From the NCBI RefSeq assembly GCF_036588685.1, contig NC_086373.1, forward strand, positions 101,742,001 to 101,806,000: a stretch of 64,000 nucleotides of DNA. Direction: 5' to 3'. Shown here one piece after another: positions 12,201-63,906 of the stretch. The stretch is from Mytilus trossulus (taxonomy: Eukaryota). Position numbers and translations under genes: made by a program. Every line of letters begins with the position of its first letter. Position 1 is the first letter of the stretch. The notes under the pieces are model-generated. The model was not told where the DNA came from, did not search any database, and saw only the letters and a list, made by a program, of their open reading frames with translations.

Positions 12201-15178
12201 TAATTCAGTGGTTGTCGGTTTGTTTATGTGTTACATATTTGTTTTTTGTTAATTTTTTGTTCATAAATAAGGCCATTAGTTTTTTCTTTAGAATTGTTTT
12301 ACATTTTAATTTCAGGGCCTTTCTTAGTTGACTATAGGGTATGGGCTTTGCTCCTTGTTAAAGGCTGTACAGTGACCTATAGTTGTTAATTTTTGTGTCT
12401 GTTGGTCTCTTGTGGAGAGTTGTCACATTGGCAATCATACCACATCTTCTTTTTTATAAGTAGTTCATCTTCTGTATCAATAGCATTTCAACACTGAGGT
12501 TGTGACTTCAACTCCAATCTTAATTGACCAGGATTGCTAGCTTCATGGCAATTGGCTTAAACCGAAAGTAATAACTTGCCAATAACGCTGTAAGTTGCAT
12601 TAAAAAACAAAAATAAATGTGTTATCTATTTCAGATTTTGACTTTTTCATGTAATGAGTTTAGATATCTAGTAAGTGATGTTTTCTAGTGTCAATAGTTC
12701 AAATTGTATTGTCAACCTGGTACATGTATGTTAATTAGGAAACATATTGTTTTACATGCTAAACATGTGTATATGTATATATTTTCCAATTTGTATTTCT
12801 GATTTATGTTCGAAGTTCGAACTAACATCAAAGTCCCTTAATACAAACAAATTGATTGATGCAAATTACCTTAGGAAACTCCCTTGGATACTGTGACTTC
12901 ATTTTTTTTATTCATTGGATACCAATTTTTCGTGGGTTACATGGGTATAGATGAACCACAAATTCAAATGTTAAGCAAATAACATATTTTCAATAGGCTT
13001 TTATATACAAAGATTGGCAAAACCATGAAATCAAATACCCATGAAAATGCAAGTTTTCAGCAATCCACCAAAATTGATACCCACGAAAATAAATTAATCC
13101 ACATATATGCAAAAAAAAAAAAGAAAACCAACCAATTTAAATATATTCTGAACTGTACATCAAAGTAACAAAATGATTAAAATTATTTTATTTTCTGAAT
13201 TTGTTTACTTCTGTTCAAATTTTAACATATCTAGTGAAATTTATGTTATTTTCTTTGAGGAGACTTTAGAACAAACTTAATTAAAACATGATTTGAACTA
13301 ACTAAGTACTGAGTCATTAATAGTTACAAATGTTAGAGGAATGATTCTGAAAAGTTAAGTCTCCTGGGACAAATAATTGAAAAACATCATAGAAAATTTG
13401 TGCCGAAGACTTGAGTAAAGAAGGGTTGTTATATTTTATCGAATTGATATATAAGATCATGATGATATACCATCTTAAGGTGTTTATATAACACAACTTA
13501 TTTGCTATGCCCATGATGCCTATGTCTGTAGCGACATTTTGGATTTAAATGAATGTAACCTATGTATCACTGGTAAATATATTTTGTATAATTCAGTCAG
13601 GGATTACCTAGATTTGGTTTTGAAGTTTGGTTGTACCTGTAGAAAACTTTATCATAAATTAGGCTGTAACAGGCAATAGTTTTCTCAATTGAATTGTTTT
13701 ATTTGTGATTTTTGGGCCTTTAGAAGCTGACTATGCAGAATTGGCTTTGGTCATTGTTGAAGGCTGTATAGTGACCTACATTTAGTTATTTTCTGAGTCA
13801 TTTTTTCTTTTGGTAGGATTTGTGTTATTTGCAATCATACCAAATCTTCTTTTTTGTATATCTTCCTATACAAAACTCCTGGCTAACAGAAAATAAAATA
13901 AATAATGACGAGCAATATCAATTGACCCATTGCTGATGACACTGAAATAATAGGCATTCAAGGTACAAAACAGTGTATTTATTGGCATTTAGATAACACA
14001 AGACCATTACATTGTACCTAATTATTCAAAATTAAACAATGACCTGTGAGTTTTTTTTTCCAGAAAATACAGTAAAATGCAAGAGTTGATACCAGATGTG
14101 AACTGCAATCGTCTTAAAAACATTGTAGCTATGGAATGGTATAACATATGATTTTTTATGAATCATGAGCATGATAAGACTTGCATGTATATATGTACTA
14201 TGTCTTAAGTCTATTACAATACACCTTATCGCTATTTATGGGTCTCAATGGGGTCTAAGTGTGACGAAGGATTGCCAATTTTTACTATTGTGAGCACTGT
14301 GAAAACCGGAATGAAGTAGCGGGACACAAGAAATAACAAAAAAATGAGAATTACTTACGTACATAGTGTAAGCGTAATACGGGAATCTAACAAAAAAAGT
14401 TAGCAGGATCCGGGGTCAGAATCCCCTATTAAGACCACTCTTTATATTTGTCTACCATTACACAATACCGGAGATCAGACAGGTTCCCGTAAAATTCTGA
14501 CATCATGTACAATACATAATATGTGACACCACAAAGGAAAAGTGATTGTTGTATTATTTTAATACTTCAAGCGGGAAAGATTCTCAGGTCAGCCCGGTTT
14601 AGCGATAACGTGTATCAAAGTCTACACAAGCTTCCGAATTTCATTAATGAATGCACTGCCAAAGTTTACCTGCGGTCATTTTGGGGAAACTTTGTCAAAT
14701 GACATGTGGGGTAAAGATATTTGCTTTTATATGTCAATTTTTCCAGGGGAAAATGCACCAAATGGTAGGTCATGGATACTGTAAATTGTAAATTATAGGC
14801 CTGCTATGTCATGTATGTAGACAGGTCTGACAGGCAGATCTGCACAATTCAAATACACAGTAAATCAAATCTTATAAAATGACAGTAGTTGTGCAAAATT
14901 TTTCAACTGTGAGAGTATTTGTTTCCCCATAGCAAGTTGTTTTTGTTGTAATTATAAAGTTGACATTTCATAAATAACAAACCTTTGGTAAAGTCCAATC
15001 GAAAAACTTCATCGCCACTGTCATTTCGAGCTGAAATGAAAGAAAAAATACATAGTTACAAAGTTAAGGATATAATTGAAATATGTAATGTAGATAGGAT
15101 TTCATGAAAGATTTACATACATTTAAAACGCCCTGTTTTGTGTGACCGTATGCCCTGGCGAGCCCCAACGGCCGCCAT
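163..15178 (-). CDS. RICTOR: RICTOR (mTORC2 subunit), N-terminal 16 coding exons, 564 codons; gene continues beyond the left edge of the window
   Basis: Manually spliced, all GT-AG and phase-consistent: 15121-15178, 14983-15030, 11655-11814, 10806-10937, 9688-9878, 6427-6599, 5472-5539, 5113-5180, 3880-3962, 3362-3449, 2894-2984, 2366-2432, 1935-2015, 1413-1513, 634-811, 163-267. Translation MAAVGARQG...RNDSGDE...RKLGYLNAF...HEAKEVRAATLRVLRY...AIGNDGNHERDRMVR...RATILLGELLHL...WNWDLISSILK is colinear with vertebrate RICTOR as I recall it. Confidence 0.96.
430..562. repeat. ~72-bp tandem duplication (2 copies) in a RICTOR intron
   Basis: GAAAAATGAACATA...TATACACCAACATGA...GGAGGTCAAGTCAAAT occurs at 430 and 502. 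Confidence 0.8.
634..811 (-). CDS. RICTOR: RICTOR coding exon 15
   Basis: QAQKAVYYLDRFHSLKKKGVVPCSLYLDQLIQ...LYLSK. Confidence 0.92.
1413..1513 (-). CDS. RICTOR: RICTOR coding exon 14
   Basis: ASTLLPHECSYHNHCLPSLLSIASSMD. Confidence 0.93.
1935..2015 (-). CDS. RICTOR: RICTOR coding exon 13
   Basis: ALVEVIISSSTKLSIRATILLGELLHL. Confidence 0.94.
2366..2432 (-). CDS. RICTOR: RICTOR coding exon 12
   Basis: PNLVENHIALILFAWIGAGILE. Confidence 0.92.
2533..2720. mobile_element. PIF/Harbinger (Tourist-like) MITE
   Basis: 41-bp TIRs GGGCTATTCCATTTAAACATA...GGAAGGCA (1 mismatch); TTA target-site duplication at 2530-2532 and 2721-2723. Confidence 0.85.
2894..2984 (-). CDS. RICTOR: RICTOR coding exon 11
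   Basis: DPSVMKYTWRLTEGFVAEEGKSSLPHMAKIR. Confidence 0.93.
3362..3449 (-). CDS. RICTOR: RICTOR coding exon 10
   Basis: QGILDILYDLFRLQVPEFTEDFSEALLSV. Confidence 0.92.
3880..3962 (-). CDS. RICTOR: RICTOR coding exon 9
   Basis: GILRFCRPDGSGLQSIVGILYLPFPEIR. Confidence 0.92.
4605..4943. mobile_element. Foldback/MITE with long inverted arms
   Basis: ACAGGCT..TATTTGAACTTGGAATT at the left end mirrored at the right end; inverted over ~125 bp per arm; TA flanks; shorter relative at 21432-21563. Confidence 0.8.
5113..5180 (-). CDS. RICTOR: RICTOR coding exon 8
   Basis: EDKEHRFASSKMAVIAIMKSWP. Confidence 0.92.
5472..5539 (-). CDS. RICTOR: RICTOR coding exon 7
   Basis: QLLAPFTDCHYRFSADSSDGST. Confidence 0.92.
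5729..6043 (+). mobile_element. 3'-terminal fragment of the Naiad-type element (family B tail)
   Basis: Closely similar to 38958-39260; ends GGCAATCATACCACATCTTCTTTTTTATAT. Further copies at 12140-12458, 13655-13860 and 45509-45900. Confidence 0.8.
6427..6599 (-). CDS. RICTOR: RICTOR coding exon 6
   Basis: FLNPELLSLCGGISTII...PRINESLVSTILYLLNHPRTRH...DLE. Confidence 0.95.
6757..7017 (-). mobile_element. Helentron-associated (HINE/DINE-like) non-autonomous element, degenerate
   Basis: Minus strand starts TTTTTATGCTCC, has a GTCC/GTCT-type microsatellite remnant and ends CTTGTT. Confidence 0.45.
9688..9878 (-). CDS. RICTOR: RICTOR coding exon 5
   Basis: NEVERIHAIKLIRK...AIGNDGNHERDRMVRISLATICEI. 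Confidence 0.95.
10261..10535 (+). mobile_element. Short dispersed retro-repeat (family D)
   Basis: Copies at 50345-50578 (+), 4189-4303 (-) and 17409-17480 (-); ends CTTTGACACATTCCCCATTTCCATTCTCAATTTTA. Confidence 0.75.
10806..10937 (-). CDS. RICTOR: RICTOR coding exon 4
   Basis: LRISLFHEAKEVRAATLRVLRYFIQD...IDYLIVR. Confidence 0.95.
11655..11814 (-). CDS. RICTOR: RICTOR coding exon 3
   Basis: PTDNLKEIL...RKLGYLNAFVKFL; within ORF 11651-11839; GTAAGT donor. Confidence 0.93.
12140..12458 (+). mobile_element. Family B tail copy
   Basis: TTTAACCCCGCCACATT...CCTGTCCCAAGT...ATACCACATCTTC. Confidence 0.8.
14983..15030 (-). CDS. RICTOR: RICTOR coding exon 2 (RNDSGDEVFRLDFTK)
   Basis: TTCAG acceptor, GTTTGT donor; RNDSG motif. 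Confidence 0.9.
15121..15178 (-). CDS. RICTOR: RICTOR coding exon 1 (MAAVGARQGIRSHKTGRFK)
   Basis: ATG at 15178-15176 in AAT-ATG-G context; donor GTATGT. Confidence 0.85.
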
Positions 15179-15553: not shown

Positions 15554-18500
15554 GTATGTTGTAGAAGGGTTATCATTGAAACATGTACCTGAAAACCCCC
15601 AGATAAATGGTGTAATGATTTTTTTAGGGGTCAACCCGATATGCCAACATGGTAACACTCAGATTCGTAATACTCAACTAGTATGACGCCCTAATAGACA
15701 ACTTTCGAGTTCGATTCATTTCTGTCAAAAACTCTGGTTTTAGTGAACGTCGTTTGTGCGTTTAGGGGCGTCGTCACTTCCATTCCTATGTTGAGCGAGT
15801 GGTTGGAAAACTATAATTCTATATTGTATGAATTATTCTGCAAATTGAATTCTCATAATTGACAATCAGCATTGCTGTCATTAGGGAATTGACATTCAGT
15901 ACCTACAGAACAACCATTATTCCTAGTTTATCCTGCACGATGACAATCACTAAGACGCCTGATGAACGTAAGTAGTGCAGGGATACAGGCGACCCCCTCT
16001 ATCTGCATGATCTGGTAAATGACGTCATGATTTTGACTAAAATTGACCCTTTGAACACTGACTTTGGATGTTGTTTGGTTAATCTAATTGACATGATTGA
16101 AAATCATATTGTGTGAACAGAAAGCAGTACAATTTCTCTGGGCAAAGTTTTATCGAATAGAAAATCATACCATGTAAACACACCTTTCGTCATTATAAGC
16201 ACAATGTTATCATAGTTATTTAAATCATTTTTTTTTCAGGCAACAGTCATCTGTGAACCGGTAGTTGATGGTAATGGTGGAATACCAGCTGGTTGTCAGT
16301 GTGATAAAGATAATGTTATATGGATTGCTGACATGAGGTTGGGGATTCTAACCATGGACCAATCTGGTCAGTTTAAACAGGTACAAAGTCTATTTTCCAT
16401 TTGAATTGTGCAGACTAGATTATTCAATGCAGATAATTTTTTGCGATATTGAATCTTAAAAAGGGAGGAAAGATACCAGAGGGACAGTCAAACTCATAGA
16501 TGGAAAATAAACTGACAATGCCATCATGCATGCATGGCTTAAAATAAAAAGACAAACAGACAAATAATAGTATAGAAGTAATACTAAAGACTAAGCAACA
16601 TGAACCCCAACAAAAACTGGGGGTGATTTAAGGTGCTCCGTAAGTGTAAGCAGATCTTGCTCCACATGTGGCACACCTAAACTGCTGTGAACATTGTTAA
16701 AATCTAGAAGGTAAAATATGTTTGCCCTGATATTTTCTTAAAACTTAAAGGCTAATTATAACAATACATGAGTAAATAAATGATATTTCCTGTCTTCCAG
16801 TTTTGTACAGCAGACAGAGATGGAAATGTTATGCAGGGTTGTAATGACTGTAGTTTTGATTATGATGGTAATTTATGGGTAACAGCACCAGCAGGGGAGA
16901 TATCTCCACACCCTTTTAGAAGATCCACTGAGGTAAAATTTACTTGTATTTTTCAAATAAACAAGATTTACAGTTTGAATACACTTGAATTCAGTAGATT
17001 AAAAGTACAATATTTTTATCATGTTTATTATATAAAAAAGGGGACAAAGGAAAAAACCTTTAATACATAATTTTACTATTTCCCAAAATTAGAGCACAAC
17101 ATTATAATATACTTTATTACAAATCCATGCAGAGAGCACGATGATAAAGTAAAGAGCTAGATAATCTTATATACTGTGGATTCATTATTATTCTTTGGAT
17201 ACCAAATTTCGTGGATTTCGTGGGCACAGTCAAACCACGAAATTAAGTATTCAACGAATGATAATATTTCTATAGGTTTGTATGCAGACTTCAGCAAAAC
17301 CACGAAATCAAATATCCACGAATATGCAAGTGTTTCTTAATCCACGAAAATTGGTACCCACGAAAAAAAATGAATCCACAGTATTTTAAAAAAATAGATA
17401 AAGAAATAGAATTGAGAATGGTAATAGGGAATGTTTTATAGAGACAATAACCCAACAAAGACCAGAAAACAACAGAAGGGCACTGATTTATAAACATAAA
17501 CAACTCATCTAATCATTTCATATGATCTTTATTCACAAATGCTGGATTTATATTTGCTGAAAAGCATCTTATCTGTATTTGACTTATCTATAAATAGTAT
17601 CAGCAGTTTTAAATAGTGAAACTGCTAATATAAAAAAGAAGATGTGGTATGATTGCCAATTAGAAAACTATTCACAAAAGACCAAAATGACCCAGAGCAA
17701 GCATTGTGTTTCAAAAATTGAAATTTATCTGTCTTTAGAGAAGAAATATTGAATGACACTTGATGCAGTGGTATATAGATCAGTATTGTTACAGTTCACA
17801 AATTGTTAAATGTATTTGTAATATTGTTTACTATAGGATCGGTTTGGATCAGTCTATTGTGTGACTAATAAGAAAGAAGTGATTAAGGTCGATACAGGGT
17901 ACAAGTTCTCTAATGGTATAGCTGTACAACATAAACCCGATGGAAAACCATGGAAGGTGATAGTAGCGGAGACATTTACCAAATCACTGTGGGCATATGA
18001 TATCCTGGGTCCCGGTCAAGTAGGACAGAAGACATTATGGGGAAAGTTACCAGGTAGGGAAACATAAAGATTTATAAGGTTTTCTGTGATATTGGTTATT
18101 TGTTATTCAGGGTAAATTGTTACAGAATTTATTTTATTACTCAGCTGACAAAAGGCTTATTTAAATGGTAGCTAACATTAGGTATGATTATTACAAGAAC
18201 AAAAAAAAAGAAGACAATTTACATATGTTACTGTTTAAGGTGACATCTTTTCAAAAGCAATACATTTGATAAAGATGATATGTTAAAGAGAACAACCTGA
18301 CCAAAAAGCCAAAAAGAAAAAAAACACAGAGATTTAATCAAAATTTACTTTTTTCATTGTTTTAGCTCTTTCCATTCCTGATGCCGATTTTGTCTATTCA
18401 GTTTATTGTTAATTGCAATGACAAAAATTAATTACTGTATAGCTAAAAAATGTGTAATTTGATCAAAATTTAAATATAGTATAAATGTTCTGTCTTTTTG

Positions 18501-22146: not shown

Positions 22147-23150
22147 ATATAAAAAAGAAGTTGTGGTATGATTGCCAATGAGACAACTATCACTAAAGAC
22201 CAAATGACACACATTAACAACTATAGGTCACCTTCAACAATGAGCAAAGCCCATACCACATAATCAGCTCTAAAAGGCTCCGATAAGACAATGTAAACAA
22301 TTCAAACAAGAAAACTAACGGCCTTATTTATGTAAAAAAATTAACAAAAAACAAATATGTAACACATACACAAACGACAACCACTGAATTTACAGGTTCC
22401 TGACTTGGGACAGGCACATACATAAATAATATGGCGGGGTTAAACATGTTAGCGGGATCTCAACCCTCCTCCTAACCTGGGACAGTGGTATAACAGTACA
22501 ACATAAGAACGTCTATAAAAATCCCTTGAAAAAGGCTTAACTCATCAGATGGACAAAAAATACAAGTGGACGTGGCCGGGTACTTATACATCCCAACACA
22601 AAACACAAAGAACAGATCTGAGAGTACTCACAGTTATCTGACAGCTAGTTCAAAGCTACCAACAACTAATAAAAAAAATCATGCATCTAAGACTAAACTA
22701 TCAATCCGTACACATCCATTATCATGTGGATTTAGTATAAAGACGTCAAAAACAGCCAGAGACAACATGAACTTGTGCAATGCCATGTTACAGATATCGA
22801 CATATTGTAGATCCATGAATATGTATATGTATATAACATACTAGTAATATTTAGTTAGCTTTTAATTTACTGATAAAATCAATATTTATACCAATAAACA
22901 CAATATTCAATGATCTTATTACAGTGTTGAGAAGGTAACCTTTTAGAATAAGTTTATTTAAGGGAGCGACAAGTTTACATGGATCATTTCTAAATTTCCG
23001 GGCACGGTTAACAACATTTCCGTAAAAATGAGGATGTGCTACCCCGTTTGAAATTACGGTTTTCTACAAGTACAACCAAACTTTAATACCAAATCTTTAT
23101 ATCTATGGAAAAATTTAGTAAAGGTTATAACTTATAAGTAATTTATGGGA
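22147..23150 (-). mobile_element. 3' ~1 kb of the family B Naiad element nested in antisense within family A
   Basis: Reverse complement aligns by eye to ~38320-39260; CGATATCC occurs near both junctions (22135, 23152), a possible TSD. Confidence 0.8.
22690..22760 (-). promoter_or_regulatory. SECIS-like element, second copy (first A of AUGA mutated to U)
   Basis: UGAC-GUCUUUAUAC-U-AAA-UCCA-loop-UGGA-U-GUGUACGGAU-UGAU. Confidence 0.65.
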
Positions 23151-24486
23151 ACGATATCCCTGGTTTAACCCTACTTTCCGCTATATAGATGATGTTCTTT
23201 CACTAAATGATTCAAAATTTAGTGACTATGTGGAACGCATCTATCCCATCGAACTAGTTATAAAGGATACTACAGATACAATTAAGTCGGCCTCATTTCC
23301 CGACTTACATCTAGAAATTGACAATGAGGGTCGGTTGAAAACAAAACTTTACGACAACAGAGATGATTTCAGCTTTCCAATTGTGAAATTTCCATTTCTA
23401 AGTAGCAACATTCCAGCAGCAGCTGCATACGGGGTATGTATCTCCCAATTGATACGATATTCCCGTGCTTGCATTTCCTATCATGGTTTTCTTGATATAG
23501 GGTTGCTGCTCACAAGGAAGCCATTAAACCAAGAGTTCCAAATGGTGAAGTTGAAAATATGCCTTCGTAAATTTTACGGACGCCATCACGAGTTGGTTGA
23601 CCGTTAATGAATAACCATTTCACAAATGATATCGGATATGTTCCGTACGTCGTAACTGCAATCCCCTTCCCTTTCATGAATGTGACCTACCGAATAAGAC
23701 TATTTACCGGATTTGTTATTACATAAGCAACACGACGGGTGCCACATATGGAGCAGGATCTGCAATCTTCATGTTCGTCAGATTCATGTCCCAATCCAAG
23801 GTTAAGCGTTTATTGATGTTACCCTGTAGCTTAGATGCTATATGCAGAAGGTCGATTATATATTTGGGTTATGCAATGATTGTAAGGCGTACATGTTTCT
23901 CTTGCAAGTTTAAGCTAACCTTGACAATTTTTTCAAGTTTCTTTAGATAAAGAAATTGTTTGTGTTTGAGTTCGTTTCTCAGATGCTATAATCTATGTCA
24001 ACTAAATTTTGTATATGGAATGTTCGTTAGTTGTCTGGTAGGTAGACTTCATCTTCATCCATTAGTCTCCATTAGCATTAGGTCAATTGTAATGTATATA
24101 TATATATATTATATTATATATAAACGAGTCTAAATTGAAAACTACGTTCAAACCTATGATTGCGTTGGATAAAAACCGCAATTTTTATACGTGTGCATGT
24201 CAAACAAATTTCGTTGTAGAAGGGTCTAAAAACAGCACAAACAACATTTTCCAAAAGACCAAAAAAGTGAAAAAGTATATTTCAACAAAACGCATTTGAC
24301 TAACAGGTCGAACAACTGATGTTCTTTAACCCTGCTGACTGCCATTGACGATTGCCAAATAAAATTGATCACAAGATGTAACAAAATGGATCTGAATATT
24401 AATTTAATACGTCACAGAAAAAAAAATTTGTAAACTTGTGGCTACGATGTTGTGCCACAAACATTCGGTGTCAATATTTCTTTAGT

Positions 24487-29804: not shown

Positions 29805-31070
29805 AAAAAGAGGGACGAAAGATACCAAAGGGACATTCAAACTCATAAATCTAAAACAAACTGCTTTTAACTAGCTGTCAGTAACTGCGAGTACTCTCAA
29901 ATCGTATTTTCTAGTTAATTCGACCTGTTGATACTGTTTATAATGCTTTTTTGTTATTTTTTATTTATATGGATCTTGTCTGTACACCAGCTTTGATTAT
30001 TTTTAATATCTTCAATTTTTCACTTATTCTTACAACATTTGTATAAACTTCAAGATTATAAAAAAACGGTTTTTTTCTAAAGTGAACATTGATTGGTTAA
30101 ATATTTCTCAGTGATGTCCTGTGTTTGAATTTGTTTGTTAGCTTTTTGGTCATGAATGTTTGTCTCTAATATTTAATTAACTGTGCATTTGTATTCAGAT
30201 ATCGCAGATCAAATTTATTCGTTCATTGTGTAATCATACGTTTTTTGATTGAGTTAAGTCTGCCAATTGATATTTTATCGTATGTTTTTCTATGTTGTGA
30301 TGTTATGCTATTGTTTCAGAAAAAGGGAGAAGGTTTGGATTCATTAAAACGTTTAATCCCGCTGCAAATGTTTGCACCTGTCCTAAGCCAGGAATCTGAT
30401 GTACAGTAGTTGTCGTTTGTTTATCTAATATATACGTGTTTCTCGTTTCTCGTTTTGTTTATATAGATTAGACCGTTGGTTTTCCCGTTTGAATGGTTTC
30501 ACACTAGTAATTTTGGGGCCCTTTATAGCTTGTTGTTCGGTGTGAGCCAAGGCTCCGGGTTGAAGGCCGTACTTTAACCTATAATGGTTTACTTTTTAAA
30601 TTGTTATTTTGATGGAGAGTTGTCTCATTGGCACTCACACCACATCTTCCTATATCTATTGACAACGCCATGGCTAAAAATGAAAAAGACAAACAGAAAA
30701 ACAATAGTACACATTACACAACATAAAAAACTAAACAATAAACAATACGAACCCCACCAAAAAACAAGGCGTGATCTCAGGTGCTCCTGAAGGGTAAGCA
30801 GATCCTGCTCCACATGTGGCACCCGTCGTGTTGCTTATGTGATAAAAAATCCGGTAAATAGTCTAATTCGGTAGGTCATATTCATGAAAGGGAAGGAGAT
30901 TGTAGTTACGATGTAAGGAACATATCCCATATCATTTGTGAAACGGTTATTCCATAACGGTCAACCAACTCGTGATGGCGTCCGTAAAACTTACGAAGGG
31001 ATGATTTCAACTTCACCCTTAATTTTGGAACTCTTGGTTAAATAGTTTCCTTGTGAGCAGCAACCCTCTA
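29805..31070 (-). mobile_element. Family A Penelope-like 3' end (RT C-terminus plus tail), split by the family C insertion
   Basis: 30800-31070 is the reverse complement of ~23495-23765; the tail continues at 29805-29863; another tail copy lies at 16460-16680. Confidence 0.75.
29864..30659 (+). mobile_element. Family C retro-repeat inserted into family A
   Basis: Interrupts host AAACAAACTG|ACAACGCC; ends CACCACATCTTCCTATATCTAT; partial copies at 32020-32218, 58586-58830 and 11320-11440. Confidence 0.75.
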
Positions 31071-31784: not shown

Positions 31785-31828
31785 GCGTCACTGATGAGTC
31801 TTTTGTAGACGAAACGCGCGTCTGGCGT
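31785..31828 (+). ncRNA. Minimal type-I hammerhead ribozyme in a retrozyme fragment (~31660-31870)
   Basis: GCGTCA-CTGATGA-GTCT-TTTGT-AGAC-GAAAC-GCGC-GTC-TGGCGT; predicted cleavage after C31822. Confidence 0.88.
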
Positions 31829-33694: not shown

Positions 33695-35712
33695 CTCCTT
33701 AATAATTTATTATATAAAGTTATGAAGGTAGAGAGCACTCATGCGCCAATTTTAAGTTGATGCTGTGTGTTATTTTATTGTGTGTATTACCTGGTCTTGT
33801 GAGATGCAAATAGAGTGTTATCTAAAATTAAAATTTATGACTCTCAAAACTGTTTTTTTCAATATTAAAATTAAAATTGCTTTGTTCAATCTCTTTCACA
33901 TATATATATAAATATTGGAATTTTGTTTAAAGATACTGGTTTTAAATTTGTTTGTTCCAAGTACCTGATGTAGGTTATTCCAGAAACAAGTAGCATACAA
34001 GGGAAACCGGTATCTTTCTATATTTCACAGGCAAAACACTAATTAATAGAAACGTCATTGTTAGAAACATCTGCAATAGGTTTAATTATTACAATAACAC
34101 TATATGACAAGAGAAAAGAATAATATAACAGGTACTAAAATAGTTATTGTTGGACTAAGATTGATAGTGCATGATCTTAGATTGATTTAATTCTTCTAAT
34201 GTATAATAACAGTCCATTCGAACTTGGAATGTTTCTACGAATTACGTCATAGTTAAGTGCTTCTAATAGGTCAATTAAAAATTATGGCGGAAATGTACAA
34301 CAGACATCAGGATGTCTATAGACATATGCAAACAATGCTAGGAACGTATGAAGCGACAGGTTACATTAACCTTGCACAACCCTCAAAGATTTGAAATTCA
34401 ACTCATTTATAATAACTAAAACTTAATATGTAAAAATGGACTTCAAAGTTAAGCTAAAGTCTTCAGAACTGTATTAGAGATAAGAAATTATTTTTGGTCA
34501 GACATTATTTTGAGATCCCTTCTGAAAGGAAACACAACCAAAAACTCTAATCAATAATAGGAACACTTAATCAGTGAACGTTTGTGTCAAGTTTACACTT
34601 TGTGAAACAAATCAAGCGAATAAAACAGCGGGACTCAGCGTTAAATATTCTTTTTTCAAAAATAAATTAATTGGTAGAACAAAACAGTGTACACTGGTCG
34701 TATCCAAAGTCACATGCTTTGTTTAAAAAATGTAACAATATTACTAAAAACTGATGTGTTATCTGTGTTTAAAATCGATTCAGCAAAAATTTGAACACCA
34801 AATCTCTGTATTATTGAAACAATCTAATGAAAGTTTGAAGATACTTATGGTAAGGAAATAGATGACTTCATAATGCACAAGTTATACATATTGCTCATTC
34901 ATCTCAATCTTAAATATAACTTCAGACACGAGCAAAGCGAACGGGTAAAAAATTATACAGAACTTTAGAAAGGGACAAAGGCCCATCATCGTTCAAACAG
35001 GAAACAAAAACCAATGAATTTCGTATTGATTTTCGACGTTAAGCTGAACGATCCAAATCTATAAACGGAAAAGTTATTTCTCTTATTAAAAAAAATATCT
35101 AAATCAGTTCCCTTGGATAAATTTCCGCAGTAAAGTTAGATGATTCCGGATTATTTAGAGCAAAAATATCTTCAAGGTAAGGTCAAGTTTGATTAAATAG
35201 AATTTAGGATGATCGTTCAAATAGTTTGGCAATATAAACTTTGATTCATTACATTACAATGAAAGAGATGCGTATAAAGGAATATAAATGTTGTCTATTT
35301 GATTGCTTATAACCTGTTTAAAAAAACTTTATTGCAGAAGTGACATGCATATTGTCAAGATGAAAATTTACAGCCTTAATCATCTCTTCACAGTTCCAGT
35401 AAGTGTTTCTATCATATGTACAGTTTCATTTTACAATACGTCTATAATATGTGTTAGATTTAAACCTAGACTGAATCGTTGATGAACTGGGAACAAAATA
35501 TAAATTTACAAATGTTAGCGACAGTCTACGTTTTTTGATTTTACATTTTATGAGCAATTACGTTAAAAATTATACTCTTCAATCATATTTTCCAATGCAG
35601 CCTTCCTTTCTTACGAATTCGTAATTTATATATTCCGTTATTTTAACTCCTAATTCAATGTTTTGACTTTCGGCCTCATTTTACCTTCTCATAACCCTTT
35701 AAATAATACAAA

Positions 35713-38700
35713 ATGGAAAGAAAACACTTAACACCAATCCTTCAAGGATATTCAACCTCGGTCAATCTAAATTCCCCATATAAATTTAGTACTTTTTATA
35801 ATTTGGTTAAAGGTGGCAATGCTGCAGCAGACAGATTATTCGATAAAAATGCACGTGGATATTCACGAATACTTCCGTGCAATGCCAGAAAATGACGAAC
35901 CTGTTCTAGATTACCTTTTGATAATACCATAAGGTCAACAGTGAACGGTAGAGCTTTTTCGCTTTCCGTTTCCTGCGACATTACATGAAAAACACAAAGC
36001 CTCATTTAACTAGCTACATGAACATAGCAAAAGCGTGGTATACAATATGTAGGACAAACAGGACGGGAGTTTTTTTAAATGAACACAGGAACATCTATAC
36101 CGCTTCTCCGAAAACCTAAGAAATTCAAAAGTATAATCTATCAACATTTAGGTAAACACAACCACAATATCAAATTTATTAGATTTCAACCGCTCGAAAA
36201 CCGGTTCAGAAACAAAAAGGGCAATCGCCTAAACAATTTGAAGATTCCAGTAAAACTATCGATCTGTCTTGGATTAAGCGTCTTCAAAAGCTTATTCCCA
36301 GGATCTAAATGACAATATACTTGGGCAAGGGAACATATTTACTATTTTTCTATTGATATCATGAATGTTATTGATAAAAAAACATCGAAATAATAGGTCT
36401 CATGGGAAACGTATCAATCGAAATCAACGAGTTAAACATCTTATATATTATACACTTGTTAATCTCCTATCTATATTTAAAAACAATGGAAGGCAATAGT
36501 TGTTATGTAAACTGGGTCAAATACCCATTAGTAAATTACACGATATTTTCAAAGAGTGTGACACTATCTCTTTCTTCAGCCCACTGTATGAATATTCTCG
36601 TATAATTACATTTTTTTGCCACCATAGGCTGTTCACGCGTATCGACAAACCTGAAGATCATAAACGTCATTGTGTGAAAATTAAATATATGAGCAGAGGT
36701 ATTAATTTTATCTACTTATCTTGTATATTTAATGACTCTACCGTTCAAAACTTTATACTTCCCTATTTTGATTACATAGTACCACCTAGAATTAACTGTA
36801 AATCGTCGAAGTTTAGATATGTTCCCTATAGCCATGTTATTACAGGGGAACTCAATATCGTCCAGGACAAAGAGGTTAAAAACTTTTTGAAAAAAGGACC
36901 TAAATATCGTCTTCCATCTAAAATAGATTGGAAAGAGTGTCGTCAAGTCACCAAAGATGCTCTTTCCTCGTTTTGAAAAAGCGGTGTAAACGGGAAAAAT
37001 CTGATAAAAAACTCTTGATTCTTAAAATAAATGTATGAATGTGATAGAGAATATAACCTTTTAAAAAAAAATTAGAAGTAAATAATAAAGTATATAATAC
37101 ACCTATTTCCAGAATACGAAATAAACGTCAAGAACTTTCAAAGCGGTTTGTGTTTTTACCGACCGACAAAGCAGCCAACAATGTGATGGTGATATGCCGT
37201 AAATACTACAAGGACGTTCTTAAGAATGAAATTTTAAATTTATCTACATTCAAGATCATCTGCCCCACAGAGAGTCATATAGTAAACAAACATATTACAA
37301 CCACATCAAAGCCCCAGGCTTCTTCTGAACATTTGGAGGTCCCTTCTATGTATATGCTACCTAAATTACACCAAAAAACATTTAAATATCATTTCATCTC
37401 GGCCTCTAGTTAGTGTTCTACCACTTATCTTTCAGTGTGTTTATCAAGTTCATAAACTTCTATTAAAGAGTTTATCATCGACTTCTGTAATAAAATATAT
37501 GAACATAGTGGTATGAACTATTTTTGGAGTGTACCAATTCTTTGGGTTCCTTTTTTAGATAAATTACGTGCTTTTGATGGTCTTTTTGATTCTGTTGACA
37601 GTTTGGATTTTTCTCCTCTTTACACTACACTTCCATACTTGGTAAAGCTGAATGCAAATAGTATATTTGCTGCAACTAATGTCAACCCTTCTTCTCTAAT
37701 GAGAAAGGTAAATATGCTAGATATACTTACTAGAGGTGTGATGAGATGATTGAAGCTGTTAATTTTCTACTTGATAATATTTATGTACGTTTCGGCAAAA
37801 AAGTTTATCGACAGGGTACTAATTGTGCCCCTTTCATAGCGGATATGTTTTTGTACTGTTACAAATCACAGTTTATGACTTAACTCGAGAAAGACTCGTT
37901 GAAATTGCAATTAATTGATAAATTCAACAACACTTACCGTTATCTTGATGACATTTTTTCGTTAAATAATCAAGAATTTTCTCAATATACTACTGAAATT
38001 TACCCCCAAGGAACTTAATTTAAATAAATCAAATTTATACGTTAATAACAGTCCTTTCCTGGATTTAGATATTTCGGTTTTAAACGAGAAACTCCACACT
38101 AAGATTTACGACAAAAGGGACGTTTGTTCGTTCTCTATTGTTAATTTTCCATTTTTCGATGTTGATGTTTCTTTGGCACAATCTTACGGTGTTTATATTT
38201 CACAATTCGTTCGCTATGCCCGTGTCTGTTGTTATGTTTTTTGATTTTAACGAACGCAATCTATGTATTACTGGTAAATTATTTAACCAGGTGTATCGCT
38301 ACCACAAATTTATTTAAACCTTTACTAAATTTTTCCATAGATATAAATATTTGGTTTTGAAATTGTAGGTTGTTCCTGTACATAACTTATTTCAAACAGG
38401 ATATAACATCCTAATTTTTACGGAAATGTTGTTAACCGTGCCCGGAAATTTAGAAATGATCCTTGTAAACTTATCGCTCCTTAAAATAAACTTATTCTAA
38501 AATGTAACTAATTCAACACTGTAATAAGATTATTAAATATTGTTTTTATCGGTATAAATATTGATTTTGTTATCAGGAAATTAATAGCAAACATCAATAT
38601 TACTAGTATGTTATACACATAAACACATTCATGGATCTACAATCTGTCGATACCTGTAACTTGTCATTGCACAATGTCATGTTTTCTCTGACTGTTTATG

Positions 38701-39260
38701 ACGCCTTTACATTAAATCAATTGGATGTTTGATGTGTACGGATTGATTGTTGAGTCTTAGATAAATGATTTGTTTGTCTACTCTCAGATCTGTTCCTAGT
38801 GTCTTTTTGTTGTCGGGATGTACAAGTACCCGGCCACGTCTAATTTGAGTCCATCTGATGAGCTAAGCCTTTTTCAACTGATTTTTATAGTTGTTCTTAT
38901 GTTGTACTGTTATACCACTGTCCCAGGTTAGGGGGAGGGTTGTAATACCGCTAACAAGTTTAACACCGCCACAGTTTTTATGTATGTGTCTGTCCCAAGT
39001 CAGGAGGCTGTAATTCAGTGGTTGTCGTTTGTTTATGTGTTCATATTTCGTTCATGTTTGATATAAATAAGGTCGATAGTTTTTTCGTTTGAATTGTTTT
39101 ACATTGCCATATCGCGTCCTTTTATAGCTGACTATGCGGTATAGGCTTTGCTCATGGTTGAAGGCCGTAAGATGACCTATAGTTGTTAATGTATGTGTCA
39201 TTTTGGTCTCTTGTGGACAGTTATCTCATTGGCAATCATACCAAATCTTCTTTTTTATAT
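35713..39260 (+). mobile_element. Decayed, near full-length Naiad-type Penelope-like retrotransposon (family B): N-terminal GIY-YIG endonuclease, then RT; putatively selenoprotein-encoding
   Basis: From ATG 35713: CNARK*RTC Zn motif, LI*LAT*..GIQYVGQTGR, QEH, IYQH..H..QPLE, WIKRLQ..LND (EN); NCKSSKF..HVITGEL linker; KGPKYR, PTDKAANN, LPKLH..FIS, DFSPLYTTLP, GTNCAP, YRYLDD, KIYDKRD, SYGVYISQFVRYARVC (RT); many frameshifts; 3' UTR to 39260. Confidence 0.88.
38688..38760 (+). promoter_or_regulatory. Type-II SECIS-like element in the 3' UTR of the Naiad element
   Basis: AUGA 38698-38701, 12-nt spacer, AAA 38714-38716, apical mini-stem, complementary 3' arm GUGUACGGAU, UGAU 38744-38747. Confidence 0.72.
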
Positions 39261-41520
39261 TTGAATTACACTTAAAACAAAACGATTAAAGAAGGGCAAT
39301 AGTAACCTCATCCAAATATCCATAAATGTGGACAATCAATTTACTTCTTTAGAATTTTTTAATATAGTATGAATGAAACAGAAACAACAAGAAGCTGACA
39401 AAAACTCCCATGTGTTATAATTTGCTTACTAGTATCTCATAATAATCAATATCAATATCAAAAAAGAATTTTGTTGCCAGGTGAAAGGAAATTCCAGTGA
39501 ATGTAAACGAATTGGAACTTATATAGCTGATCTTTGTTCACTTTAACATTGTAGTACTTTAACAACACTGCATTTGAGGAACCTCGTCATGCCTTTTTTA
39601 AAAGTATAGTATTATACAAACTCATCATAGATACCAGAATAAAGAAAAAAGTCGACACTCGAATAATACAAATTACCGGAAAGAGAAAAATATAAAGAAA
39701 TCGTATTTAAAATGTTGCTCTTAGTTGCGGTTGTTTGCGATTCGTTTCGTTGGTTGATATAGTCAAGACTTTAAGAGAAATCTATCCAAACAAGTACGAA
39801 ACTATGAAAATATAACATAGTTCGAACAGTTAATATCAAATTGATGTTGGCTGTTAATGGCCATAATTTCATGAAATACATAATGCATCTTAACAAATTA
39901 AGGCAATATGTAAATACCACTGACAACTGAAACCTTGGTGATTATGCGGAATGCTAAAAAACGAGGACATTATATAATAGTGGTTTGTGATTGATGACCA
40001 AAGATCATGGGATAGAGTGATAAAGTGTTCATTGTAGGACAACAACTCACTAATGTAATACAAAGTACAATATAGATCTTCGACCTTGCCTTCAATCACA
40101 TACATCATTCCATAGTCTTAAATCTCATTATGTTCACTTGACTTCAATTCCATTTAGCTCCTCCTTTGATTTACCAATGAGGTAATTTACAAATTGATTA
40201 CTTTATTTATCGTTGTTGGTTTACACTTGTGCATTCAATGTAATTACTCTCTGGAAACTGGTTAAGTTAACCATGATCTATGAGAATGGTTCACGCAATG
40301 GACTTCTATAGCACATGATGACAAATATACAGATATAAAGTCATCCTGACACAATCAGTCAGACCAAGAGAAAATAACCACCATTAGAGGACGAGCAAAA
40401 TATTTTATCTCCCTAAGGCAAAGCTGACCTTAGATAAATTTGGCCTTTTTTTTTTTTAACTTCTCTCGTTTTCATGTCTTAGACCACTTGGATTTCATTT
40501 ATTGATAGGATAAGGAGTGTTCCTGATTGGATTTAATCCAGAACAGCTCTTCGGACTGACAAACTTATAAAAAATGTTATTTTTATCGTCTATGTTCTTC
40601 AATTTTTGTTATAAAAATAATATAAATAAAAAAATTGTAAGATAAAATTTTGCATAATCTCGTCCCCTTTCTTTGACATAGAAACGTAGATAAAGTAGTC
40701 AAATTTCACTATCGTAACCGTCAACATACTGCAACTCGTTTCGTCGTACCATTTGCATCTGATATCGACATATTAATCTCTATTCAACATTTATTGATAA
40801 ATATCTGCTATGTTCTACCATTTTCTCTCTTAGTGCTGCTCTTGTCCTGTGTTGTTAAATATGTTTGTGTTTTTACATTTAAGTGATTTAACCTTTTGCA
40901 AGGCAATCATACCACATCTTCTTTTTATCTTATTTCATTCGCAGCGTTTTATTTCTCTTTTAACTTGATATATGGTCCTGGCAGTTGCCAATAATTGAAA
41001 AACCTTATGTCCATTTTGTATCATTTTTGTTGGTATCATAGGTACAGATACAAAATAAAATCATATAAAACCGTTTGAAAGAACATTAAAAAACAACGTT
41101 ATAAATTTCTTCGGTCAAAAGCGCTTTTCTGAATTTACCTTCATTAGGAACACTAAAAACCTAATATTTTAAAGCAAAGGATATTACAGTACCCAAACAG
41201 CTGAAGAGCTACTTAACTCAAAGGATATAAAAAATAAGCAAATTCATCTGAAGTCAACTTTAGTGTCTTATTATTTATAAAATTTACTGGCAGTACAAGA
41301 AGACACCATCTTGCGGTTTACTCTAATTTTAACCGTACGTTAATTTATTTCAACAAAATCTCATTCATAAATAACAGGCTTCAAATCATATAAATTAAAC
41401 TCACGTTACGTTTAAAAAAGACTCATCAGTGACGCTCCAAGTAAAAAAAAGTTAAAAGGCCATAAAGTACGAATTTGAAGAGCATTAACGACCTTACAGT
41501 AATAGGGGATATGTCTTGTC

Positions 41521-41804: not shown

Positions 41805-43517
41805 TTCTACCAAAAACTAGACTCTGATCCTACTACATCTTTTAGCAGAGATATTACTAATAGTTTGGTAGAAATGCATGCCGATGGTTTCATCGATGAC
41901 AAAACTCTTGAATATTTGAAACCAGAAAACCCAAAACCGGGCAGATTTTATTTATTACCTAAAATTCATAAGGCCAATAACCCAGGAAGACCTATAGTTT
42001 CAGCGAACGGTCATCCGACGGAAAAAATATCGGAATTTGTTGGCTTCCATCTTCGTCAACATGTTGAAGACTTACCATCTCACATCAAAGATACAACCGA
42101 TTATCTTAGAAAAATTCAGGCCTTAAACCCACTCCCCTCCGACACGACTCTTGTTTCCATGGATGTTACCTCCCTCTACACTAATATTCCACATGCAGAT
42201 GGCATCGATGCATGCAAAGAAGTTTGGAATTCCAGACCAGTGAAATATCCACCTACTGAATGCCTGGTCAAAATGCTCACGCTGGTACTTAAGAAAAACA
42301 ACTTCACTTTTGATGGAGATCATTATTTGCAAGTAAATGGAACTGCCATGGGCACCAAAATGGCTCCGTCATATGCCAACATATTTATGGGCAAATTAGA
42401 GAAACAACTCCTTGAAACTTCCATCGAAAAACCGCTTTCCTGGTTTAGATTTATAGATGATGTGGATATGAAATGGAATAAAAGCGACGAGGATTTAGAC
42501 ACTTTTATCACTCATGCCAACAACATACATCCAAGTATCAAATTTACTCATGAGAAGTCTAAATCCAAAATCGCCTTCCTCGATACTTCAAGTTCGCTCA
42601 CAGAGGGCATCATATCTACAGATTTATATTCTAAGCCTACTGACACTCATCAATATTTGTCCCCTAAAAGTTGCCATCCTGCTCATCTTACCAAGAGCAT
42701 TCCATACAGTCAGGCACTTAGAGTCAAGCGAATATGCTCCAACACAGAAACAACTAAAAGACAACTGCGTAAACTTGAAACTCGCTTGAAGAAAAGGGGC
42801 TACAAACACAGAAATATCAAAAAAAGCTTTCAGAAAGCGGAGTCAATTCCGAGGAGTGAACTATTGGAATACAAAGTTAAAAAGAAAAACAAAAGGACTC
42901 CATGTGTTCTAACTTATCACCCATCTCTCAAAAACAGCTTTGGTGTCATTCGTGAGCATTGGAAATCAGTTGAAAAGAATTCCAAACTGTCCAAGATTTT
43001 CCCTGAGCCTCCAATGATAGCTTTTAGGCAACCTAGTAGTCTACGGAACCTACTAGTGCGGGCTGAAGTGTCTGATAATAGAAGTACTCCTGGAGAATGT
43101 CGTTCTTGTGGAGAAAAACACTGCAAATGCTGTTTACAGATGCAGCATTCGTCAACATTTCACAGTAAGGCAACCGAAAATAACTATAAGATATTTTGCA
43201 ATGTTACCTGCAAAAGTATGAATGTTATTTACATACTAGAATGTTCGGTTTGTGGCCTCCAATATGTTGGTGAATCAAAGCAGCCTTTCCACAAACGCCT
43301 CAATGGCCATAGGAGTGATATATCTAAGAAGCCACTTCTTCCAGTCTCTCAGCACTTCAGACAGTCAGATCACAAACTTGATGACTTTAACCGCATGAAA
43401 ATTCTAGTGATTGAACAGAACATTCACTGGAGTGATGCACAGCGACAGGTTCGGGAAAGCTTTTGGATAAAGGAACTTAATGTACATCACCCAAACGGCA
43501 TCAATAAGAAATACTAA
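41805..43517 (+). CDS. Penelope RT + GIY-YIG endonuclease ORF (5'-truncated, no native start)
   Basis: [10 protein letters not shown] upstream of the listed ORF; [66 protein letters not shown] linker, [30 protein letters not shown]. Confidence 0.93.
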
Positions 43518-45508: not shown

Positions 45509-45900
45509 ATTGTATAGTTCGTTCTTATGTTGTACTGTTATACCACTGTCCCAGGTTAGTGGGAGGGTTCGGATCCCGCTAACATTTGTAATCCCGCCAC
45601 ATTATGTATGTAAGTGCCTGTCCCAAGTCATGAGCCTGCTATTCAGTGGTTGTCGTTTGTTTATTGTTACATATTTGTTTTCGTTCATTTTTTTGTACAT
45701 AAATTAGGCCGTAAGTTTTCTCGTTTGAATTGTTTTACATTGTCATTTCGGGGCCTTTTATAGCTTACTATGCGGTATGGGCTTTGCTCATCGTTGAAGT
45801 TGCGGTACGGTGACCTACAGATGTTAAACTTTCTGTGTCATTCTAGTCACTTGTGGACAGTTGACTCATTGGCAAACATACCACATCTTCTTTTTTATAT
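45509..45900 (+). mobile_element. Family B tail copy
   Basis: Aligns by eye to 38885-39260. Confidence 0.8.
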
Positions 45901-50905: not shown

Positions 50906-53900
50906 GTAGATGAAATATTTGCTTACTAGATAATTTGCAGAGAAGAAAGAAAGAAAATTTCTTTCTATAAATATAGGGAGATATATACTGATTGCCAATG
51001 CAAATTTGCCGACTTTTCAAGAAAGAAACTATCGATAACCACTGATTTTTCAGGTTCCCGACCCAGCCGGACAGACACATGAGGAATATTGTATTGTTTT
51101 TATACTCCACATCCTCCCTCTAACCGAAGACTTAAATTTAATTCCAGTAAGTCGAAACAGTTCGCATTACATTGCAATGCAGGGATCTGTTAACTTATCC
51201 AGGACAACAGTTGCCTTCATCCCTAGTTGATGAAACATATCGATTATATTAGTGACAACATCTTTGCTAATTAAATATAATACTATTGCTTCAATGTTTC
51301 ATTGACATATATATTGGTAACATATTGCTTGCAGTCTCTTTGTACTACAAGCACATGTGTTATAGACTTTAAATGTTAACCATGCCTCATGGCTAGGTGT
51401 AGGAATATTTATTTCTTCAAACGTCAATAAAGAAACATGCTTCTTTCATAAAAAGAAAGAACTTGCTTATAATTAAATAATGGGGAGCCGACAAAGTATA
51501 TGTTTTATACCTTATAATATTTCTCGGATTCTGCTAGTTATCTCATTTCCGGCGGCTAATTCTTATGGGAAAAAATCACCTGCTTGATTATGTCGAAAAG
51601 AATCTTCACTGATGAAAAAATACAATTAAATATGCCTGACAGGAAAACAGAAAATCTCAAATATAGCTATGATAGTTAAATTACCTGTATATAAAGCAAA
51701 CTATTCTCATTACACGAAATAAAAAAAACACAACACCATTAAAGAGGATTTAAACCTTTAATCGCATTAATATTAGTCTTAGATATGTTGAGGGGTGGTT
51801 GCTCGCACAATCTTTAGTACATACAACACATTGATATTTCCGACCAATATTTAAGTGGCAAATTCAATCTTGGAATCTTCAACTGGACAACAAATCTGGT
51901 TTAAAAAAAATTGCAATCTACAAAGCTAATGATGCTTTAAAATAAAGACAGGGTAAACTATGGCCATGATTGGGTGTAAAAAGTAGCAAAAGGGACCAGA
52001 CCCGAGTATATATTCGTGTTTTCTTTTAACTTTTGATTGAAATTGAATATAAAAGCAACTAAGTTTATCTAAGTATTTTCCATTTTTAAATCTATTTTAA
52101 CCATTTAGCGGCTACAAATATTTCCAAATATTTACACCCCGTGTATCAACTGTATATGTTTGGTTTTTACGGACGTGGGTAAATCCAAAAAAGCTATTCA
52201 TAATGAGAAATTTATAAAATTAAATGTTATTTTCACTTACACACATTGGGTCGATACCTATACCGATGGACTGTAATCGTCTAGAATATCGTCAGTTCAG
52301 TAGTCAGGACTGCTTAGAATAAGAACACATATTTTTTCCAAAGTTTTTAAATGTTAGATTTAGAAATTATATAGAAACTGATGTTCAAAATTACTCGAAA
52401 AAAGTTTACGTTAAATTTGGAAAAGCTTAAAAGGTCCCTTTGGTCCAATAAGTTCTAATGTTTGTACATATTTTTAACTTCCATGTTTTCAAAGCAAAAT
52501 GTCAAAAAGTTAAACAAGAGCAGGTCTGACGAAGATTATTTAAAAAGTCGTTTTTGATGCCCAAAATCTATAAAAGAATAGCTTCTTTTTAGCATAAGGT
52601 GGATGATTTTTGAAAATGAAGTTTCCTCTTACATTGATTTTTTTTTTTAAGTTTCCAGTATGCATGCGAACAAAACTTATCATTGACCCTCGACGAATAA
52701 GAAAAGCTAAATAGGCAAATAATAACGAAGTTGAAGAGCATTTGGGACCATATTTGTATGTAAAAAGCTCTTAAAGTAACAAAACGATCTGAAAACATAG
52801 CTCAACTGATAAGAGTAAAGTTTAAATATTTCTTATTAATTTTCTTTTATGTTATGGTAATTTTCCAGAATTCTTTAAACAAAGGCATTGAACTAGGATA
52901 TGTAAGTAAAGGTAATGATTTGGTCTCTTGTGGAGAATTTTCTCATTTGCAATCATACCACGTCTCCTTCTTTAAATTAAAATTTCATTGTTTATTTGTT
53001 TCCTGCGTGGTAAATATATGTATTTTTAGGAAATTATATTCATTAAAATTGACAAATACTCACCCATTTAAATTTTATATAAAGCGTAATTTACGTTTCG
53101 TTACCATTACTATGGAGATTTGTTATGATTGTCAGTGAAACTACGTATACATCCATCATTGCACAAGGAACAGGAAAGACACACATAATGGACTATGTCT
53201 CAAGGACAACTCAAAGTCAAACCAACCATGTGATGACGAGTTATTTATTTTACGTCTTTGGTCTCTTATACGACCTTGAAATGTCTAACGCGTTGCAATA
53301 CAAAACAACTCTTGAATCAAACAATTAGTTTTACTAGTAATTACATAACATAATTTACTACTAATATCTTAAACATTTTCATTTTCCAGAATGGTTATAC
53401 ATGACAACCATGATATATCAAAACAATAAATGGCATGTATGACAAGATATGTTAAAAATATCAAAATGGCAATGAAAAAATCTCCTCAGTAGCAGATGTT
53501 GTTTTGTTTATGATAAAGGTAACGAGTCTCATTTGGTAACATAACAATCGAGTCGTGAAAGATGTTTTGATTTTAAGATACCACAATAATCGGCTTGTTA
53601 TGTTTTGATCCATTTCGGAACTTCTGGACTATATCTTGATTTGTATCTGGGGATGCATACTGTATAACATGCTTAAAAACGAACCGATCTAGATCCTTTT
53701 TAAGTTGAATGGGTTTCCTCAGTTACTTCTCTTCGAGAATTAAATGCTTCTTTTTTATTTGTTTGTAAAAGCGTTTACCGACACACAGTTTGTATGAAGC
53801 GCAGAACAGTTTCATTCTAAAAAAGTGCGTACGGTCAACGCGTCAACACTAAAAGGTTACTAAACAAAAAGCATTCAATACTTGTAAATACATTTTTCTT

Positions 53901-59099: not shown

Positions 59100-59630
59100 A
59101 AAAAAAACAGTTATCACAGGTAACATGTGTGTAATTTGTTACGCCAGACGCGCGTTTCGTCATCATAAGACTCAACAGTGACGCGCGGATAAAAAAGTAA
59201 GATATCCAAACAAGAGCAATGAAGGTCCAAAATTTCAAAAAAATTATGCCAATTACAGCTACGGTAATATATGCCTGGGATAAGAAAGTCCTTTGTATTT
59301 CGAATAATTTTCACTTTAACAAACAGTAAATTTATAAAAATGACCATATAGTTGATATTGATGCCAACGCCGAAGTGCTGACTACTGAGTTGGTGATAAC
59401 CTCGGGGACGAAACGTCCATTAGCAGTGGCAACTAACAGTGGAGTAAATAGTTATCAAAGGTACCAGGCTAATAATTTGATGCGCCAGACAGGGGTTTCG
59501 TCTACAATAGGCTCATCAGTGATGCTTAGATAACAAAGTTAGAAATCCAAACAAGTATAAAGATGAAGAGCATTGAAGATCCAAAATTCTAAAAGAAATT
59601 GTGCCAAGTAATAAATGCCTGGGATCAACC
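59100..59630 (-). mobile_element. Non-LTR retrozyme: two tandem minimal hammerheads 341 nt apart
   Basis: Hammerheads at 59141-59184 (core CTGTTGA, A6 mutated) and 59482-59525 (CTGATGA..GAAAC..GTC); flanking sequence repeats with the same period. Confidence 0.82.
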
Positions 59631-63864: not shown

Positions 63865-63906
63865 CGTCACTGATGAGTCTTATGTTGACGAAACGCGCGT
63901 CTGCCG
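63865..63906 (+). ncRNA. Minimal hammerhead ribozyme in a retrozyme copy (~63560-63930)
   Basis: CGTCA-CTGATGA-GTC-TTATGTT-GAC-GAAAC-GCGC-GTC-TGCCG. Confidence 0.85.

Follow-up and report, generated by a model that had tools for sequence, protein, structure and literature searches.

The DNA analysed here is a 64,000-nucleotide window of the genome of the mussel Mytilus trossulus (contig NC_086373.1, positions 101,742,001 to 101,806,000; G+C content of 31%, no N). Positions 35625 to 39261 of its forward strand hold an old, dead Penelope-like retrotransposon of the Naiad type, and the family to which this copy belongs very probably used selenocysteine (Sec) recoding. Four in-frame UGA codons are found in all subfamilies, at the second Cys of a C-x4-C-x2-C motif, the first Cys of a CCHH motif, a Cys shortly before the GIY-YIG endonuclease motif, and the first Cys of a CxC motif. 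A fifth codon, eight residues past the DKA motif (DKA+8), is UGA in a younger subfamily; the subfamily of the window copy has UGC there. An earlier note on this DNA had proposed Sec recoding from three TGA codons and had placed the element at 35713-39260. The proposal is now supported by the occurrence of the TGAs across the family, by their alignment with Cys, and by a candidate selenocysteine insertion sequence (SECIS) in the 3' untranslated region (UTR). The element does lie where the note put it, but it is slightly longer, from about 35625 to 39261.

Translation of reading frame 1 of 35713-36330 shows TGA at 35893-35895, 35986-35988, and 36019-36021, TAA at 36007, and TAG at 36025, all exactly as the note described. 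The genome assembly (1.30 Gb, 541 contigs, 14 of them chromosome sized) was searched for further copies, and 30 copies (the window copy and 29 others) were read out of several hundred longer ones. In the other 29, TGA is present in 25 at 35893 (TGC in 3), in 24 at 35986, and in 27 at 36019, while 36007 reads TAT (Tyr) in 28 and 36025 reads AAG (Lys) in 24. Because of these tallies, the TGAs are a property of the family, and the TAA (36007-36009) and TAG (36025-36027) are private decay. This is the outcome that the note had named as its check: TGAs that are not private to the window copy, with sense codons elsewhere at the TAA and TAG. The tally over all 30 copies gave TGA in 25/30 (TGC in 3), 24/28, and 28/30, respectively. 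In every contig from three other sequencing runs, of other organisms by their labels, position 36009 carried T and position 36025 carried A, and none of the differences in an incomplete listing for these contigs fell at the three TGAs. Random private decay that happened to strike three Cys codons might be suspected in a copy as heavily decayed as this one. However, the same TGAs occur in 24 to 28 of about 30 independent copies and the other stops of the window copy do not, so that this explanation is refuted and retains a negligible probability.

The copies also revealed that the three TGAs confirmed here are part of a family total of five. A fourth is the first Cys codon of the CxC linker motif (TGA in 19/20 copies) and is deleted in the window copy. 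The fifth, at DKA+8, is TGA in 13, TGC in 6, and TGT in 1 of 22 copies, and the window copy has TGC. For analysis of the frame, columns occupied in most copies were kept and a T-run in the endonuclease region was read at 6 letters. The resulting family frame is open over 1021 codon columns, from the Met region to a TAA at 38594, and the only stops common to most copies are the five TGAs. Copies with Cys at DKA+8, the window copy included, form a clade (support of 0.997) whose terminal branches are longer than those of the TGA copies. Because the Cys copies form a supported clade, the exchange of Cys and Sec at DKA+8, in either direction, took place in a living lineage.

To which residues the TGAs correspond was read from related proteins. 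A reverse transcriptase piece without interruptions was searched against 1.8 billion protein representatives. Many relatives were returned, the best matches being proteins of 900 to 1100 amino acids with reverse transcriptase at the C-terminal end, including proteins of 915 to 1113 residues. Nine full-length Cys-type Naiad proteins were then aligned to natural pieces of the family, with an X standing for every TGA. Cys occupies all five TGA columns in 9/9 of these proteins, which bears out the claim that the TGAs align with Cys; for the second TGA (35986) the Cys was confirmed and its assignment corrected, as it is the first Cys of the Naiad CCHH motif. The UGA-bearing Cys positions are presumably metal binding. 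Ordinary Cys codons in the family behave differently: TGA fills 5 of 540 cells (0.9%) in 29 ordinary Cys columns but 109 of 130 (84%) in the five TGA columns. Of the single-step paths by which a codon of the open reading frame (ORF) can become a stop, 7.4% are changes from Cys to TGA, and five of five would arise by chance with a probability of ∼2e-6. The argument of the note that random decay should not favor Cys codons was thus upheld, both by this figure and by the sharing of the TGAs across copies.

Shared TGAs at Cys codons could also be true stops, fixed in a crippled master element that was amplified nonautonomously by the enzymes of another, Cys-type Naiad. All 30 copies are broken, other Penelope-like families are present in the genome, and the SECIS match described below scores under the curated cutoff, as this explanation would have it. 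The selection on the frame behind the TGAs bears on the choice between the two possibilities. Inserted copies decay neutrally, and a change that several copies have in common dates back to the active lineage; column majorities served only to classify variants. Over the whole ORF, the ratio of nonsynonymous to synonymous changes (N/S) was 1.07 for variants in three or more copies and 3.29 for singletons (Fisher P of 2e-8; 3e-7 without CpG changes). The same contrast was found past the first TGA (1.11 versus 3.20; P of 2e-6), between the third and fourth TGAs (1.21 versus 2.72; P of 0.019), and past the last TGA (1.06 versus 3.48; P of 9e-4). In the out-of-frame controls, shared variants and singletons did not differ significantly (3.3 versus 3.1 in the +1 frame, 4.1 versus 3.8 in the +2 frame). 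Purifying selection acted on the protein as the family diversified, at a time when it already had the TGAs, and because the downstream frame was selected with the TGAs present, a dead master copied in trans is disfavored. True stops are also at odds with five shared stops that are all TGA at invariant Cys, with a Cys-for-Sec exchange that marks a subfamily, and with a SECIS located where a selenoprotein gene requires one. We consider true stops improbable.

The 3' region of the window copy was compared with Rfam. Its best match was the SECIS_1 model, at 38690-38756 on the plus strand (22.5 bits, full model length), and the same model was the best match in two other copies (22.7 and 22.8 bits). 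This was the sole SECIS match in the 64-kb window on both strands. The E-value of ∼0.1 counts all 4227 Rfam families and would be four orders of magnitude lower for the single family sought. At the Rfam gathering threshold there was no match in the window, and the SECIS surfaced only under E-value reporting; it was missed in a scan of 10 loci at an E-value of ≤1 because of the larger search space. The fragment at 22147-23168, the only family fragment in the window to reach the SECIS region, gave no match. A consensus fold was obtained with RNAalifold over nine copies, and single copies were folded as well. At the base of the predicted hairpin, a 5-bp lower helix is followed by an internal loop in which AUGA faces UGAU, forming the sheared G·A quartet; above it are a helix II of 9 to 10 bp, an unpaired UAA, and a 5-bp ministem. 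On this predicted fold, the hairpin is a form 2 SECIS with the canonical AUGA/AA/GA core. It starts 96 nucleotides (nt) past the TAA of the family frame.

The host has two genes for tRNA-Sec, at C9:67288420 and C1:41171809 (79.6 and 77 bits; model cutoff of 47). Separately, long tandem arrays with a period of ∼891 to 900 bp at G000:C10:63843916-64492367 contain a tRNA-like gene that scored 45.9 bits on the tRNA-Sec model (cutoff of 47); this is probably another long-arm tRNA and not tRNA-Sec. An RNA-seq library contains a 1.4-kb contig of the family interior.

Selection downstream of a UGA reveals read-through but not the residue inserted, and with the SECIS below the Rfam threshold, the UGAs might have been read by near-cognate tRNAs as Cys, Trp, or Arg, with the SECIS-like hairpin being incidental. 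Five leaky stops in series, however, would leave almost no full-length protein. The hairpin has every core feature of a SECIS and is the only such match in 64 kb, and Sec genes are typically recognized by the combination of UGA at Cys and a SECIS, which has already been published for Naiads (PMC8557442). Read-through without Sec is therefore given a very low probability.

Sec recoding remains the favored explanation, and several points weigh against it. No intact copy was present among the 30 examined, and the family may be extinct in this host. The SECIS scores of 22.5 to 22.8 bits are below the Rfam cutoff of 35, and the distance of 96 nt from the stop compares with 1 to 21 nt in three of the four published families. 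The evidence for RNA consists of contigs from RNA libraries, which may carry DNA. In the selection test, each shared variant counts as one event, and the test falls short of a full phylogenetic codon model. Recoding of five UGAs in a single message must be processive, a behavior known mainly from selenoprotein P. Finally, translation and the insertion of Sec are both inferred from sequence.

With these reservations, a working mechanism can be proposed. The single protein of the family has a GIY-YIG endonuclease at the N terminus, then a CxC linker, and a reverse transcriptase at the C terminus, and its ORF carried in-frame UGAs at conserved Cys positions. Active elements most likely decoded these UGAs as Sec to make the protein, with recoding served by the element's own SECIS in the 3' UTR and by the tRNA-Sec machinery of the host. 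Transposition would then have depended on the selenium supply, as the earlier note had suggested.

The assignment of the family to Naiads was examined feature by feature. Naiads are Penelope-like elements with a GIY-YIG domain at the N terminus, a CxC linker, a DKA motif, and a fingers domain that contains an insertion (Craig et al. 2021, PMC8557442). In the mussel family, the order is endonuclease (∼35875-36320), CxC, DKA, and reverse transcriptase (∼37560-38590), on the same strand and in the family frame, in line with the endonuclease-first layout given in the note. The endonuclease piece of another copy matched the Neptune-type GIY-YIG domain encoded elsewhere in the window (33% identity, E = 3e-6), and the reverse transcriptase piece of another copy matched the Neptune-type reverse transcriptase (E = 5e-11). 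A C-x2-5-C-x2-C motif and a CCHH motif are present, each with U in place of one Cys, and match nine Naiad proteins column by column. The U-x-C found in 19/20 copies aligns with the CxC of nine relatives, and DKA replaces DKG in the window copy (37165-37173) and in other copies. The distance from the motif A Asp to the Gly of MGT is 89 residues, versus 63 in the Neptune-type ORF; the fingers-domain insertion (IFD), which in Naiads adds about 20 residues between RT3(A) and RT4(B), was judged by this spacing only, which is 26 residues longer. There was no hammerhead match inside 35625-39261, despite three matches elsewhere in the window. Pfam returned only a weak RVT_1 match on the decayed ORF pieces. 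Judged by sequence, the family has each of these Naiad features.

The window copy itself is far from intact. Its extent (35625-39261, plus strand, as for all features given here) follows from alignment to other genomic copies and from the 3' end that 10 tails in the window share. The copy differs from the column majority by 8.4% in the alignment with the other copies and contains 21 indels, of which 16 are frameshifts; 15 private stops interrupt its family frame, in agreement with the note that it is dead. Relative to other copies, it lacks 35 nt near the start and 96 nt at 36793/36794, and with the second deletion it lost the CxC motif, including the fourth TGA of the family (U-x-C). The remnant of the single ORF (∼1026 codons) spans 35703-38596 in the family frame, with a mutated start region. 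It includes the zinc finger-like C-x4-U-x2-C motif (35875-35904), whose second Cys is the TGA at 35893-35895. This is followed by the TGA at the first Cys of CCHH (35986-35988), the TGA of U-x4-C-G-I-Q-Y-V-G (36019-36021), and the GIY-YIG core from GIQYVG through LGLN (36037-36320), which was recognized by similarity to the Neptune-type domain. The DKA and reverse transcriptase motifs lie downstream on the same strand, in shifting frames. DKA (37165-37173) is followed eight residues on by the Cys codon TGC (37195-37197) at the family's fifth Sec site. The reverse transcriptase domain, similar to that of Neptune-type elements, occupies 37560-38590, with YLDD at 37942-37953. The TAA at 38594-38596 is the first shared non-TGA stop in frame (12/12 copies) and is followed by the putative SECIS (38690-38756).

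Within the endonuclease core, the T-run at 36068-36074 has 7 letters in the window copy and 5 to 9 among the copies. A programmed frameshift at this site was considered and rejected: 6 letters keep the frame, this length is seen most often, and every copy whose run is interrupted has it. More than half of the copies are thrown out of frame by the variation, which reflects either a mutation hot spot or an assembly weakness.

No other part of the family comes close in abundance to the 3' tail (38757-39261), as indicated by window fragments, contig depth, and genome copy counts. The note had described such tails as abundant in the window, and 10 5'-truncated family fragments were indeed found there, most of which stop at the 3' terminus of the element; they include those at 3159-3262, 5732-6043, 12141-12458, 13469-13859, 17627-17694, 22147-23168, 30264-30660, 45510-45900, and 52919-52978. 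Genome wide, the number of candidates in a first look was 253 with the 5' endonuclease part, 751 with the middle, and 3240 with a 3'-UTR stretch; 5'-truncated retrotransposition yields such a gradient, which explains the rise toward the 3' end. The contig depth summed over four runs across 38800-39261 rose ∼100-fold in the last 370 to 460 nt. The extreme tail, which thus greatly outnumbers the remainder of the element, is possibly a module shared with other families or a derivative resembling a short interspersed element. Naiads are described as biased toward insertion at (TA)n microsatellites and as forming pseudo-LTRs and tandem or inverted copies; by inspection, the 3' flanks are TA rich in some copies of this family and not in others, and one copy has an inverted partial duplicate. 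Weak matches to the twister-P1 ribozyme (14 to 16 bits, cutoff of 67) were seen at a homologous site of the 3' tail in two copies, at 38957-39015 (plus strand) and L038:1870-1905 (minus strand), and were taken as chance.

The window also contains sequences of other Penelope-like elements. An intact Neptune-type ORF of 550 amino acids lies at 41865-43517 (plus strand) and encodes reverse transcriptase followed by a C-terminal GIY-YIG domain. Hammerhead type I matches were found at 31785-31828 (plus strand), 59141-59184 (minus strand), and 63868-63903 (plus strand), with 32.5, 27.6, and 24.4 bits, respectively (cutoff of 34). Hammerhead ribozymes and an ORF with reverse transcriptase before GIY-YIG are typical of canonical Penelope-like elements. 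Another hammerhead type I match (33 bits) lies at L042:4930-4973 (minus strand), ∼450 nt past the 3' terminus of a different Sec-Naiad copy, and presumably belongs to a neighboring canonical element.

The mussel family was next set beside the clam and spider Sec-Naiads by their published descriptions. Four Sec-coding families, two from clams and two from spiders, have been reported, in agreement with the mention of clams and spiders in the note, with 3 to 4 UGAs and a SECIS just past the stop (PMC8557442). That SECIS is type I in all four and lies 1 to 21 nt from the stop in three (PMC8557442). The clam families are the closest in arrangement: the host is a bivalve, the SECIS is in the 3' UTR past a UAA or UAG stop, and UGA occupies the first Cys of CCHH, the Cys before GIY-YIG, and DKA+8, so that all three clam positions are shared. 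Unlike them, the family described here is from a mussel and has five UGAs instead of 3 to 4, adding the second Cys of C-x4-C-x2-C and the first Cys of CxC, and one of its subfamilies has Cys at DKA+8. UGA in CxC is a position not reported in PMC8557442, and the mussel SECIS is predicted to be form 2, 96 nt past the stop, in contrast to the published type I elements. The spider families Naiad_Sdum and Naiad_Smim (Stegodyphus) also have UGA in the C-x2-5-C-x2-C finger, before GIY-YIG, and at DKA+8, the finger UGAs of Naiad_Sdum being the first and second Cys (PMC8557442). Their hosts belong to another phylum, and they have no UGA in CCHH or CxC. The nine Cys-type Naiads (915 to 1113 amino acids) share the domain order and motifs, with 35 to 45% identity in the reverse transcriptase, but have Cys throughout and need no recoding; a further Cys-type relative, P0013 (643 amino acids), is from the pearl oyster Pinctada imbricata.

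For the number of UGAs, the nearest parallel is a host gene. According to Baclaocos et al. (2019), as cited in PMC8557442, bivalve selenoprotein P messages have many UGAs that are decoded with the help of SECIS elements, and because of this, bivalves are capable of processive recoding. Selenoprotein P is, however, a selenium transport gene of the host and is unrelated to the mussel family in sequence and function. The suggestion that the family may be undescribed in its host lineage held in part. Within the paper collection that was searched, there was no later report of Sec-coding Naiads and none for mussels; the host is still a bivalve, and further bivalve Sec-Naiads had been predicted in 2021 (PMC8557442).

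Only four families of Sec-coding mobile elements are known; a fifth would extend their hosts to a third group, mussels, and the family described here exceeds each of the four in its number of Sec sites. The Cys/Sec polymorphism between subfamilies, together with selection behind the UGAs, indicates that Sec coding is a trait of these elements and not a curiosity of a few consensus sequences. Annotation pipelines will split such elements at every TGA. A broader picture is offered only tentatively, and we are inclined to doubt it as a whole: a mobile element with five Sec residues, the most reported, one of them in CxC, whose Sec sites were perhaps gained stepwise and whose SECIS is scattered in thousands of fragments. 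Stepwise gain may be reflected in the older subfamily with Cys and the younger one with Sec at DKA+8. The series of four versus five Sec residues is natural material with which to study the replacement of metal-binding Cys by Sec in an endonuclease and reverse transcriptase. The 5'-truncated copies may have spread SECIS-bearing fragments on the order of thousands, as judged from the 3240 first-look candidates. If so, these dispersed fragments would be a ready source of SECIS elements for new selenoprotein genes of the host.

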